A stretch of DNA of 64,000 nucleotides from Octopus bimaculoides (taxonomy: Eukaryota): assembly GCF_001194135.2 (NCBI RefSeq), contig NC_068981.1:115838802-115902801 (forward strand), given 5' to 3'. The position numbers and the translations under genes are program-made. Below are positions 16,501 through 43,014 of this stretch, one piece after another. The first letter of the stretch is position 1; each line of letters opens with the position of its first letter. The notes below the pieces were generated by a model. It did no database searches. It saw only the letters and a list, made by a program, of their open reading frames with translations, and was not told where the DNA came from.

Positions 16501-16660
16501 CTCCAGCGTAATGGATATGTAAGGTCAAGATAGACTTTAACTTTGTACGGAGAGAAAGGTATACATAAATACATATATGTATTTATATATGTCTATATGT
16601 ACGTACATACGTCCGTACATACATACATACACACATACATGCATGCATGCATACATACAT

Positions 16661-18920
16661 AGATATGAGAAGTAAAAAGAGGACACTCCCTTGCAAACTG
16701 ATTATCCTCAAGCAGGAGCTAAAAGATATCAGTGAGAAACTCCGACATCAGAAAAGAATAACCGAGAGAAAAACAATAAACAAAAATTCAACTAGAACCA
16801 AGCAGAGACATCAGAGGTAACATCAGAGGAGACATACAGAGACATTAGAGGAGAAGCAATGAACATCACAGAACCATCTTCTCGAAAAGACACACTTCTG
16901 GAGGAAAAGCTGGATCAAAGAGAAGTAGTTTAATCAAGATGCTCTGCGGTTGCAAAAAATTCGAAGAAGTTATTGTCCATGCATTACCCCAAGACACATA
17001 GCATTGATGGTGATACCTTTATAACTGCGATCCAGAAACTTCAGGATAGAAAAACACCTGGAAGAGACTTGATTGTTAGATATTAGTTCAAGAAGCTAAC
17101 TTCCTACCGACCATATCTTATGAACCTGTACCAGGAAGCTCTCAATGGAAATAGTAGCATATCACACTGTTTCCCAAATGCAGAACTACCATCATGGCAA
17201 AAAAACTACCGGCTAATTGCATGCCAAAACCCTAGTGTATAAGATATATACAACATGTTTAAACCTCCTCCTCCAAGACCATTGTGAAAGCGATAGCATT
17301 ATTACAACAGAACACGCAGCCGGGAAGAATGGAGTCTGGGTATGTGCCGAGAAATTGTTAATAAACAAAATGTAATGTCAAAGATGCGGTGGAATAGAAA
17401 GAACCTAGTTTCAATGTGGCTAGACTACAAGAAAGCCTTTGACTCTCTTCTAAACTCATGGATGCTAGAAGCCCTTCAGTTTACTAAAGTTCCAGTGAAC
17501 ATAGTTAAAGCCATAGCTAACTTGACTTCATCGTGGGCCACCACCTTGAAATTAAACACAAAGAGTGACTGTATTATCACTGATAGTATACAGTGTCACA
17601 GAGGCATATTCCAAGAGGACAGCCCCTCTGTGATGTTGTTTGTACTTTCTGTAAACTCCTTGTCATTCATGTAAGGAAGTCTGAAAGATATCTCACTGGT
17701 TCACATGGGAACAGAAATACCATGGCCGCAGTTAAATGACTGAAAAATTAAAAGAGTAAAAGAGTAATGGCACTTGTAACAAAATAAGCGCCACTAAAGA
17801 ATATTACAGTCGAATAAAGAAAATTTGGAGCTTTCTGCATTAGAAAAAACAAAAAAACTACATCTCACAATTTGTTTGCAGTACCAGTACTTATACCAAC
17901 ATTTGGGTTGCTTGAATTGATGCTTGATGAGATCCGAAGCTGAGACTTGGAAAGCAACTCCTTGAGAAGCATTCCTTGTCTGATAACTTTAAATACATGT
18001 CCAAATATGTCGTACGATTCTATTCAATGTATCATTAGTATGTGCGTATGTGCAATGTATCAATATGTGCGTATATTAGCAGACGACCATACATAGATAC
18101 GTAAGTAGAAAACTCCGAGATGATAGTAACATTGATCATCAAAGCAGTCTATCATAGACTAACAACTAGATTACAACCTCCCACTTTGATGGGGCATGCA
18201 TTTGCAATTTAGGAACAGGAAATATCAACCAAATACGTGATGCACAAAAAGGATATAGACTTTGTGGAGTTAACACCAGAGATATCACACACATCATAAG
18301 CAGTTGTCCAAAAATGTCATCACGGTATTATCTACCAGTGAGCAATGATGTTGTAACTAAGACACTGTGTAACGAGATCCGCCGAAAAGATAACTTCGAG
18401 GACAAAAAAATAAGAACCCACAATATGGTAGAAGCCATAGCCACTCATATCAAAAAGGAGTAGTGGTGGAATGTCCCAGTGAAAACCTCATATAAAATGT
18501 TAGCACAATAGTCCTGATATAATGATTTAGGATAGAGAATAGAAACTGTGTACAGTTGCGGAAATCAGCTGTCTAGCGGATGTTAACATAAAGGTGAAAA
18601 TCAGTGAAAAAGAGACTACTTACGCTGAACTATTGAGAAATCTGCAGTTATCCTATCCAGATTACGAGTTCACGTTTATACCTGTAATTATTGGAGCACT
18701 GAGATATGTAGCACACTGCCTAAATAGTAATTTTGAGAAATTAAGCTTCTCAAAACCAGAAGGGAGAAAGTTGATTTGAAGTCGACAGAACCAATTCATC
18801 ATTGGAACTGAAGAAATTTGTAAAACTTTCGAGTTTATCATTTAGTTATATATACCAGCATGTCAAGATATGCAAGTATATGTATCAGAAGACAGATAAA
18901 GCATACAAATCTGCACGTAT
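16661..18920 (+). mobile_element. RLE-type LINE, CATA-flanked family, copy A (5'-truncated, internally deleted)
   Basis: KTPGRDLI, KNYRLIAC, WLDYKKAFDS, RGIFQEDSPS, ISSCPKMS, EISCLADVN, YAELLRNLQ, PVIIGAL; CATA-rich tracts at 16601-16660 and 18918-18968. Confidence 0.88.
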
Positions 18921-19649
18921 ACATACATACATACATACATACATACATACATACATACATACATACATATTTGTACTCACATACACGCACACATGAAAGT
19001 ATGCACGCACAAAACACAAACATATGTATGTATCAATATATAAGACTTATTCGAAACTGCAATTTCTGGACTTGCAATCTAAAATTTTTCCGTGTACATG
19101 CATTATAAATACACATGCACTCACACATACACACACTTACACACATTTACACACGTACACACTTATACGTGTGTGTGTATGTTTGTGTGTATGGATATGT
19201 ATGTATATGTGTCTACGTGTGTATATATATATATGTATATATATACGTGTATATATATATATGTATANNNNNNNNNNNNNNNNNNNNNNNNNNNNNNNNN
19301 NNNNNNNNNNNNNNNNNNNNNNNNNNNNNNNNNNNNNNNNNNNNNNNNNNNNNNNNNNNNNNNNNNNNNNNNNNNNNNNNNNNNNNNNNNNNNNNNNNNN
19401 NNNNNNNNNNNNNNNNNNNNNNNNNNNNNNNNNNNNNNNNNNNNNNNNNNNNNNNNNNNNNNNNNNNNNNNNNNNNNNNNNNNNNNNNNNNNNNNNNNNN
19501 NNNNNGATATACACATGTGTGTATATTTATGTGTGTGTGTGCTTAAATATATGTGTACGTTTGTGCGAGTATCATAATCGTTTTTCTTTTAACGTACCTA
19601 CTGGTAACTGTCAATTTTTTCTTCACAATAATTTATTCTTTCCTTTTTT

Positions 19650-40140: not shown

Positions 40141-40187
40141 AGTCATCTTCAACGAGAGAGTCCATCATATATATGTATGTACGTATG

Positions 40188-42554
40188 TCATTATTCAGTT
40201 TATTTCAAGATTTCTTGCCAATAGAGAAAGAACCGGTTTCTAACCTCGATCCAAGGTTCCTTCGTTGGAATTTCAACCCCAACAGCAGGGTATCTTTGTT
40301 TGTATGTATGTATGTATGTATGTATGTATGTATTTGCAGATTTGTGTGTTTTATGTATGTATTCTCATGTATATAGTTAATACCTAGACATCTAGTCACA
40401 TATCTAGATATTTAAATGATAAACATCTGGAAAGTTTTACAGATTTTACAGTTCCGGTGGATTAGATCTGTAGTCTTCGAAGTAGCTTTCTCCTTTCTGG
40501 TTTTGAGAAGCTTAATTTCTCAAGATTCGTATTTAGGCAGTGTGTTACATATCCCACTGCCTCAATAATTACAACCTGAGCTCGTAATCTGGATAGAGTA
40601 ACTGCTGACCTCTCAATAGTTCAGTATAGGTGTTCTCCTTTTCACTGATCTTCAGATTTATGTTAACATCCGCTGGGCAGCTAATTTCCCTTCTCTGCTA
40701 ACATTTTCTTGGGGTCTTCACTGGTACAATCCACCAGTATTCCTTTTCATTATGAGTGGCTATGGCTTCTACCATATTGTGGGTTCTTCTTTCTTTCTTT
40801 GTCCTCGAGATTATCCTTCCGACGGATTTCATTATAGAATTTCCTAGCTACAAAGTCATGTCTCCTCGGTAGATAATACCGTGGTGACATTTTCGGACAA
40901 CTGCTTATGATGTGGGTGATATCTTCAATGTGAACTCCACAAAGTCTGCATCGGTTGTCACATTTTACGGCTTTTACAGCATCTGTATCCCTTTTGTACA
41001 TCAGGAACTTGGTTGATATTTCCTGTTCCTGGATTGCAAAAGCATACCCTTCAAAGTGGGAGGTAATAATCCGGCTATTGGTCCATGATACACTGCTTTG
41101 ATGATCTATATTACTATCATTACGGAGCTTTCTACTAACAGTGCCATGTATAGCCTTCTGCTCATATAGACTCATCCTTTCATCTGGTGATATGTTGCGG
41201 TAGAGTCCTGCGACCTCTTTGGGCAAGTATTCTAGGTTATCAGACAAAGAGTGTTGCTCAAGGAGCTGCCTTCCAAGTCTTATGATGTTATCATCTTCAT
41301 GTATGCAAACTTGGTCAAGGGATGGACTTCGACATTTGGTGGTTAAAAGATGTTGCCGAAGGGATATGATAAGACATTCAAAGGCATTTTGGATCGATGT
41401 CAAACTTCTGCCGCCTTGTTTAGATTTTAGGTAGAGACGGTCTGCGTCACTGTTTATCTGGAAACTATGTGTGCTTGTTAGTATTTTTCGGGTTTTCACA
41501 TCAATGGCTCAGATCTCGTCACGCGTTCAATCAAGCAGCCCAAATGTTGGTATGAGTACTGGCACTGCAAACACACAGTGGGTTACTGTTTTATTGAATG
41601 CAGAGAGTTCTGAGGTTCAAATTTTCTTTATTCGGCTGTAATATTCTTTAGTGACACGTTACAGGTGCCATTGTAAGATATATTTTTATCTACCCCTAGA
41701 TACCTGTAACATCCCACGTCTGATAGAGGAGAAACAGTCAAATCATTGACGGAGATGCTACTAGTCTGTTTTATAGTCTTCCTCCTTTTCACAACCATAT
41801 AGCCACATTTGTCCTGACCAAACTCTAACCTTACATCCTTTGAGAATGTTGTAACTAGGTCAAGGATCTTCTTCATCTCATGCATATTCTTTGCATAAAT
41901 TTTATGCCATCCCAAAGAAACAATGGTATTTCTGTTTCCTTGTGAACCAGTGATATATCCTTCAGACTTCCTTAACATGAACGAAAAGGGGTTTACAAAA
42001 AGTATAAAGAGCATCACAGAGAGGCTGTCCCCTTGGAATATGCATTTGCGATATTGTATTCTATCGGTTATAATACAGTCACTCTTTGTGTTTAATTTCA
42101 AGATGGTGGCCCATGATGAAGTCAGGTCAGCTAAGGCTTTGGCTATTCTCACTGGAACTTAAGCAAGTTGAAGGGCTTCTAGCATCCATGAGTGGGGAAC
42201 AGAGTCAAAGGCTTTCTTGTAGTCTAGCCACATTGGAACTAGGTTCCTCCTATGCTCTCTCACCTCTGACATCACAGTTTTGTTGATTAATAATTGCTTC
42301 ACACATCTCCAGACTCAATTCTTTCCAGCTGCTTGTTCTGCTTTGATAATGGTATTGGATTCACAATAATCTTGGAAGGAGAGGTTTAAACATGCTGTAT
42401 ATATTTTATGCATTAAGTTCTGGCATGCAACTGGTAGTTGGTTTTTTCCATGTGGGTGGTTCTGCATTTGGGAATCAATTTTGTGTCTGCCAGAACTAGC
42501 CAGTGTGTTATGCTAATGTTCCCAATGAAAGCTTGTTGGTACAGATTCATAAGA
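40188..42554 (-). mobile_element. RLE-type LINE, CATA-flanked family, copy C (5'-truncated)
   Basis: RT (IFQGDSLSV, EFGQDKCG, YRYLGV), CCHC (CRLC..EDITHIISSC), RRHDFV, RLE remnant; 3' end AACTGAATAATGA at 40188; (CATA)n on the element strand at both junctions. Confidence 0.92.
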
Positions 42555-43014
42555 TATGTATGTATTATGTATATATGTATGTATGTATGTATGTATGTAT
42601 GTATGTATGTATGTATGTATATATGTATATATATATATATATATATATATATATGTATATATATATTAGCTTTCAAAGAATATATTTCTAAGTATCGTAA
42701 ACATGTGTGAATGATCACTATGATATGAGCAGAGTGACAACGCTTTTTCCACAATATCTTCTTCAAAATTTCTTTTGAGTTACATAATAATACACACCCA
42801 TCCCATACACGTACGAACTGGATTAAATTTTGTGTACCGGATTATGCAGTAAAAGACTGATGCCAGGAGAGATAAGCAAGTGCATAAGATTATGGAAATT
42901 CACCCTTTCATTCGTTCGATAAGAGAGTAATAATAGGAAATATTCATCATAGAAATTTAGACAGTAGTCGATAAACTATTTAAGTTCTTGTTTGTATTTG
43001 ATATCGTTCCACTG

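Follow-up and report, generated by a model that had tools for sequence, protein, structure and literature searches.

A candidate (CATA)n-targeting family of restriction-like-endonuclease retrotransposons in Octopus bimaculoides and its Dong-like relatives

In a 64,000-nucleotide stretch of the Octopus bimaculoides genome (NC_068981.1, positions 115,838,802 to 115,902,801; hereafter the window, in which all coordinates without a locus name are counted), four copies of one non-LTR (lacking long terminal repeats) retrotransposon family each directly follow a (CATA)n microsatellite tract, read on the sense strand of the element. The family is an R2-like, single-open-reading-frame (ORF) element of the type that carries a restriction-like endonuclease (RLE). 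Judging from the sequences of its copies and relatives, we consider it highly probable that this family and the wider clade to which it belongs integrate site-specifically, and in one orientation, in (CATA)n/(TATG)n microsatellites. A preliminary description of the stretch had proposed such a target from the four copies; the flanks of relatives in other genomes, in which 15 of 15 further 5′ junctions, from full-length and truncated copies alike, and all scorable 3′ ends adjoin sense-strand (CATA)n, now support it.

When the two long copies were used as blastn queries against the window, the family proved to consist of exactly four copies (c1 to c4; Table 1), with pairwise identities of 70-82%. 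Stop codons and frameshifts are abundant in all of them, and the copies are old and dead. Comparison with full-length relatives by tblastn placed the 5′ truncations of c1, c4, and c3 at approximately residues 283-287, 426, and 1104 of a ~1160-aa (amino acid) relative, and c2 starts only ~20 nt 3′ of the start of c3. The four truncation points are therefore distinct, although those of c2 and c3 are near each other, and owing to this truncation the window copies are without the N-terminal region of the protein.

At each of the four points, (CATA)n on the element sense strand lies directly upstream of the junction, which reads gcatacatacat followed by agatatgag in c1, catacatacatac followed by cagaataac in c2, catgcatacata followed by atacgttattgg in c3, and aatacatacata followed by tcttatgaa in c4. 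A junction was scored as positive if (CATA)3 in the sense orientation, one mismatch being allowed, occurred within 3 bp upstream. All four junctions pass, against a background of 0.72% of strand-oriented window positions, and the chance of this pattern is p ~4e-7 when three junctions are counted as independent. Three of the copies (c2, c3, and c4) also end at one shared 3′ terminus, AACTGAATAA(T/C)GA, followed by CATAC. Thus, what had been described beforehand, namely, four copies cut at four different 5′ points but each abutting sense-strand CATA, with a 3′ end common to three of them, was recovered by blastn and by reading of the junctions, with c1 falling short of the shared end. In c1, c2, and c4, the 5′ tract is itself preceded by non-element DNA; therefore, these tracts are not merely the tails of older copies. 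For c4, an RLE fragment lying upstream (43255-43870) was considered as the element whose tail forms the 5′ tract. This was rejected, as the (TAA)n end of that fragment lies ~600 bp away.

The window family and a copy from the octopod Argonauta hians (L006:1075-1175) have in common a conserved block, the final ~90 nt of the 3′ untranslated region (UTR), in a comparison of few sequences. A weak hairpin is predicted in this block, for which the sequences are too few for covariation. The internal 3′-UTR (CATA)n tract of the window copies is absent from the Argonauta copy. The idea that the internal tract and the terminal 120 bp represent a nested second element was rejected, since the terminal block is conserved in this tract-less copy. 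That c1 ends at a CATA tract (18919-18969) may mean either that sequence between two such tracts was later lost or that reverse transcriptase (RT) was primed on the internal tract, and both fit equally well.

The relatives extend the pattern well beyond the window. In four loci with full-length elements (L001-L004, from three assemblies and one metagenome scaffold), long sense-strand (CATA)n tracts occur on both sides; an intact ORF of 1164 aa is present in L002. Locus L006 of Argonauta hians holds six head-to-tail copies, that is, four 5′-truncated copies, one full-length copy, and another truncated copy, and all of the joints between them read AGAGA, then (CATA)n, then the next copy. The full-length 5′ end, CACGTGGTTAAGCC, is preceded by (CATA)n both in L006 and in an independent locus, L088. 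Two tandem truncated copies in L089 and four copies in L091 are likewise each next to (CATA)n. With the window included, 19 of 19 5′ junctions adjoin (CATA)n, always on the CATA-reading strand and never on the TATG strand. The phase of the repeat varies at the 5′ joint, and the 3′ joint always begins at the C of CATA. Several 5′ tracts are at least as long as the 3′ tracts, and very short 3′ tracts of 6-10 bp were found in L088 and in copy B of L089; therefore, the upstream repeat is the genomic target and not element sequence. Under a working criterion proposed by Kojima, a LINE (long interspersed element) is target-specific if the same sequence type is present in more than 20% of its flanks (PMC4494074). 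Here the same repeat is found in fixed orientation on both flanks of full-length and truncated elements, and at 19/19 5′ junctions. The L001 element is in addition bracketed by a direct repeat composed of (GATA)n and the same ~58 bp (2300-2500 and 6770-6880 of that locus), which may stem from a further repeat family or from a long site duplication.

The type of the element follows from its protein. A read-through translation stitched from c4 and c1 matches Pfam RVT_1 and, weakly, zf-RVT, and its best PDB matches are R2 proteins, the CCHC and RH region included. A family profile built from 17 full-length relatives aligns with an R2 protein (E=5e-51) from the RT to the RLE with its PD, D/E, and K residues, the CCHC knuckle and RH motif in between included. 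The RT, CCHC, and RLE motifs were located in c1 and c4 as well, with the PD segment missing in c4. The full-length relatives have a C-terminal RLE and no apurinic/apyrimidinic-type endonuclease (APE) domain. Hence, the earlier assignment to the RLE-encoding non-LTR elements is borne out by RVT_1, the CCHC and RH motifs, and a PD..E..K signature, together with the R2 matches. Among homologues in a large protein collection, the best identity is 47%, and the only named cephalopod there is Argonauta hians, which also supplies the closest nucleotide match of the window family (~70%). Dong-type proteins of Bombyx and Pediculus are ~30% identical over at least 95% of their length, and from these comparisons the window family appears to be an RLE element nearest the R4/Dong group. 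Over the N-terminal ~70 aa, a W..G..P..L motif is conserved across the clade and common to the Bombyx and Pediculus Dong-like proteins. It models as three helices (pLDDT, a predicted local confidence score, of 80), with no PDB fold match at E<=0.001 in Foldseek. Pfam found neither a zinc finger nor a Myb domain at the N terminus of the full-length relatives, and a PDB match to the N-terminal ~350 aa was not found. For the R4/Dong clade, a diverged Myb/SANT-like N-terminal domain without N-terminal zinc fingers has been reported (PMC7998251). No relatives turned up when viral contigs were scanned.

The family profile, run against metagenome contigs, added 80 loci, and the repeat at the flanks was found to follow the lineage of the element. 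In a neighbor-joining (NJ) tree of 727 columns, the CATA and CTTA elements split from the (TAA)n Dongs with a bootstrap value of 100. In the CATA/CTTA clade, the window family is joined by all (CATA)n elements and by two lineages with (CTTA)n on both sides. In this tree, which lacks R4/HERO/NeSL/CRE references, the window family has (TAA)n-flanked Dong-type elements as its sister, those of Bombyx and Pediculus among them. The sister lineages (L008-L011 and L090) carry (CTTA)n/(ACTT)n on both sides, and one 5′-truncated copy adjoins (ACTT)n. The control loci of Bombyx and Pediculus have (TAA)n at their ends (on both sides in Bombyx), and both are therefore Dong-type elements, in line with the Dong-like elements recorded from these insects (PMC7998251). 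In the window itself, three fragments fall in the TAA clade by blastx. The flank comparison with other elements that had been suggested thus gives (TAA)n, instead of (CATA)n, for the TAA-clade Dongs in the window and for the controls. If Dong is defined strictly by insertion in (TAA)n, the CATA-flanked elements lie outside it: all of their flanks are (CATA)n, and (TAA)n occurs only with the other clade. Assembly ERZ25878469 holds both the CATA-flanked L001 and the CTTA-flanked L090, the latter with a full-length and a truncated copy that each have (CTTA)n flanks. Since two flank types occur in one assembly and also in the window, the repeat type is a property of the element lineage and not of the neighbourhood. 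The alternative that the microsatellite supply of the host sets the flank type was rejected, as ERZ25878469 and the window each hold lineages with different flanks.

Several observations weigh against the interpretation of site-specific insertion or narrow it. The source genome contributes only four scored copies, all within the window. Copy c1 is without the shared terminus, its terminal ~120 bp being missing, and stops in the internal 3′-UTR CATA tract. At 58659-58830 (+), a decayed RLE fragment that belongs to the CATA/CTTA clade shows no recognisable CATA tract on either side, and its boundaries are undefinable. With 3′ tracts of only 6-10 bp in some copies, the insertion site may be the edge of a tract and not its interior. 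Finally, R4, HERO, NeSL, R2, and CRE reference sequences are absent from the NJ tree.

Other explanations account for parts of the same data. An unlikely one, in our judgment, is that RNA-DNA pairing alone directs the insertion, the element RNA annealing by its (CAUA)n end to any nicked or breathing (TATG)n, especially in the tails of earlier copies, with little or no specificity in the protein. The common head-to-tail arrays (c2-c3 in the window; L006, L089, and L091) suit this explanation, as do the constant agreement between tail repeat and target repeat unit, the CTTA and TAA lineages included, and the end of c1 at an internal 3′-UTR (CATA)n, which fits internal priming. However, non-element DNA lies upstream of many 5′ tracts (c1, c2, c4, L001-L004, and L088), the orientation rule is absolute (19/19), and conservation of the N-terminal domain extends across the clade. 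Pairing alone is also disfavoured by R2, the nearest system to have been studied, in which the site is chosen by the DNA-binding domains of the protein. For Dong, site choice has likewise been argued to rest on protein DNA-binding domains (PMC7998251), with the same bearing. Pairing alone is in any case a variant of the favoured explanation and compatible with it.

Far less probable is coincidence, that is, an ordinary LINE without target specificity that carries a (CATA)n 3′ tail and whose 5′ CATA tracts were met by chance in a CATA-rich genome. The caveat given in advance, that CATA tracts are common here and that the 3′ UTR contains one, is true: the window has 23 perfect CATA tracts totalling 580 bp, and the element has its own internal tract. 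Against this, the family itself accounts for no fewer than 12 of the 23 tracts, and probably for 17, and the 4/4 window and 15/15 other junctions at CATA stand out from the background of 0.72%. Moreover, an APE-type LINE (~8600-12300) and SINE-like (short interspersed element-like) units (12500-12960) in the same window are without CATA at their ends. Least probable of all, we think, is that assembly joins, or segmental or tandem duplication, produced the element-plus-CATA units. Six gaps lie in the range, and one of them (27475-27635), in the CATA tract 3′ of c3, is flanked by duplicated sequence, the 55 bp on either side being identical (27420-27474 and 27636-27690). This gap is probably an unclosed overlap in the microsatellite, and the finding is independent of it. 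No gap falls inside any copy or at any 5′ junction. The truncation points of c2 and c3 are not the same, nor are their identities to c4 (72% and 82%, respectively); therefore, they are not duplicates of each other. The same anatomy also occurs in long-contig assemblies of other species.

Site-specific insertion in (CATA)n/(TATG)n may proceed, by analogy with R2, through target-primed reverse transcription (TPRT). A protein-RNA complex would recognise (CATA)n/(TATG)n and nick the bottom (TATG)n strand, and the nicked 3′ end would then serve as primer at the (CAUA)n terminus of the element RNA. Synthesis of cDNA would often halt early, giving 5′ truncation, and its product would be linked, in variable phase, to that part of the same repeat which lies upstream. 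Each insertion would in this way gain CATA on both sides and leave two new target tracts, beside which later copies could land to form head-to-tail arrays. Such a route would explain why the orientation is fixed, why full-length and truncated copies alike have the repeat on both sides, why the 5′ phase varies, and how head-to-tail arrays grow. From this analogy we infer the position of the nick, the pairing of tail and target, and the involvement of a protein or RNA part that reads the repeat. This determinant could be (i) the N-terminal domain, (ii) the RLE, or (iii) the pairing between RNA tail and target.

Among the closest known systems is Dong (R4/Dong group; Bombyx mori, Anopheles, Biomphalaria, and ostracods), which likewise encodes RT, CCHC, and RLE, in this order, in one ORF, and the N-terminal W..G..P..L three-helix motif is present in the Dong-like elements of Bombyx and Pediculus. 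As in the window family, its microsatellite target equals its 3′ tail, its orientation is fixed, and its 5′-truncated copies adjoin the repeat (PMC7998251 and PMC3812793). Unlike Dong, the window family has a tetranucleotide, (CATA)n, as target and tail, and it belongs to the separate clade with the (CTTA)n lineages. R2 proteins (structures 9nl3, 9dou, and 8gh6) are the best structural relatives, with the RT, CCHC, and PD-(D/E)xK endonuclease aligning end to end, and R2-like TPRT is presumed for the window family. However, R2 targets the conserved site in 28S rDNA and not a microsatellite, and its N-terminal zinc finger(s) and Myb domain have no counterpart by Pfam in the relatives of the window family. 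Waldo (R1 clade) has a target, (ACAY)n, that overlaps with (CATA)n, as ACAY includes ACAT, which is CATA in another phase (PMC3812793). Waldo, however, is APE-type, in contrast to the C-terminal RLE of the window family, and the overlap is, if anything, convergent target choice. Other elements that home to simple repeats include, besides the RLE element Dong of the R4/Dong group with (TAA)n (PMC3812793, PMC4640811, PMC4494074, and PMC7998251), two further RLE cases, NeSL-related Togen with (TG)n and some HERO families with microsatellites, and three APE cases of the Tx1 clade, Kibi with (TC)n, Koshi with (TTC)n, and a crocodilian Tx1 element with (TTCC)n (PMC4640811 and PMC4494074). In insects, the R1-clade APE elements Waldo with (ACAY)n and Mino with (AC)n follow the same course (PMC3812793). 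Togen, HERO, Kibi, Koshi, and the crocodilian Tx1 share this simple-repeat homing strategy with the window family but belong to other clades with other repeat units, and none is reported for (CATA)n.

The preliminary description knew of no CATA-specific family. In agreement, a search of published full texts, with Repbase outside its scope, found no CATA- or ACAT-specific RLE element. We regard the CATA family as a new target variant within a known kind of element rather than as something categorically new, and CATA may already be noted in Repbase. More broadly, we suggest, at slightly under an even chance, that an undescribed and widespread Dong-like RLE sub-clade moved from (TAA)n to tetranucleotides, with strand-specific readers of (CATA)n and (CTTA)n that can share a genome. 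If so, these elements would be natural target-swap variants of an R2-like integration machine and a likely engine by which CATA microsatellites arise and spread in the genomes of cephalopods.

Few RLE elements home to microsatellites, and how a repeat of 3-4 bp is read is poorly understood. The lineages compared here give three related specificities, TAA, CATA, and CTTA, of which the latter two differ by one base per unit. As CATA and CTTA lineages occur in one genome, comparison of their N-terminal domain, endonuclease, and RNA tail could locate the determinant, which is relevant to the current retargeting of R2-type enzymes. The family also matters for annotation, as at least half of the CATA tracts in the window belong to it. 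"Dong-R4" LINEs are abundant, and even recently active, in octopus repeat annotations, in which targets are not discussed (PMC13282606, PMC8967140, and PMC9115989). A study of octopus Dong activity reported almost no new insertions (PMC9115989). Insertions in microsatellites are hard to call from short reads, and this may explain that scarcity.

Table 1. Coordinates of the family, its motifs and CATA tracts, and related features in the window and in locus L090 (TRF, Tandem Repeats Finder)
Feature	Position	Strand	Remarks
Degenerate (CATA)n, adjoins c1 5′ junction	16600-16660	+	TRF 16600-16665, period 4
Copy 1 (c1)	16661-18920 (blastn); feature end given as 18918	+	5′-truncated, decayed
c1 RT motif LDYKKAFDSL	17420-17449	+	
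c1 CCHC remnant	18254-18307	+	
c1 RLE SPDIMI	18510-18527	+	
c1 RLE AEISCLADVNIKVKISEKETTY	18558-18623	+	
Perfect (CATA)12.8 at c1 end	18919-18969	+	Matches internal 3′-UTR tract of other copies
Perfect (CATA)10.5, adjoins c2 5′ junction	26554-26595	+	Upstream DNA is non-element
Copy 2 (c2)	26596/26601-26954	+	3′-terminal ~360 bp; end AAACTGAATAATGA
Conserved 3′-UTR block	26845-26954; 27323-27410; 40188-40300; L006:1075-1175	+; +; -; 	
Degenerate (CATA)n	26955-27054	+	3′ flank of c2 and 5′ flank of c3
Copy 3 (c3)	27055/27060-27410	+	End GAACTGAATAACGA
c3 internal CATA tract	27288-27327	+	
(CATA)n 3′ of c3	27411-27474	+	Continues into gap 27475-27635
TAA-clade fragment	33149-33553 (also given 33216-33553)	+	5′ end adjoins (TAA)22
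TAA-clade fragment	35198-35671	+	
c4 3′ flank	39711-40187	-	Three parts: CATA remnant, SINE-like insertion, long tract
Long (CATA)n/(TATG)n tract, c4 3′ flank	39711-39833		
SINE-like insertion in c4 3′ flank	39834-40166	+	333 bp
Short CATA remnant, c4 3′ flank	40167-40187		
Copy 4 (c4)	40188-42554	-	5′-truncated; end AAACTGAATAATGA at 40188
c4 internal CATA tract	40297-40333	-	
c4 RLE EISCPADVNI..EKENTY	40626-40688	-	PD segment deleted
c4 RRHD	40846-40866	-	
c4 CCHC	40897-40950	-	
c4 RT IFQGDSLSVMLF	42006-42041	-	
c4 RT LDYKKAFDSVPH	42192-42227	-	
(CATA)n turning into (AT)n, adjoins c4 5′ junction	42555-42666	-	
TAA-clade fragment	43255-43870	-	(TAA)n tail; 5′ side adjoins (GATA)n
L090 positions of interest	1387-1490; 5908-6023; 6992-7007; 7824-7895		(CTTA)n/(ACTT)n flanks

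In the 3′ flank of c4, the SINE-like insertion appears to have split the long (CATA)n/(TATG)n tract off from the element. This unit has a tRNA-like-looking head, although ARAGORN called no tRNA in it, and its first ~70 nt resemble ~42700-42780 (-).

Elsewhere in the window, the APE-type LINE at ~8600-12300 (+) has endonuclease and RT ORFs with two gaps inside, and it is followed by SINE-like units at ~12500-12640 (+) and ~12800-12960 (-). An interstitial telomere-type hexamer array, (TAGGGT)6.7, lies at 23085-23124, beside the gap at 23137-23312.

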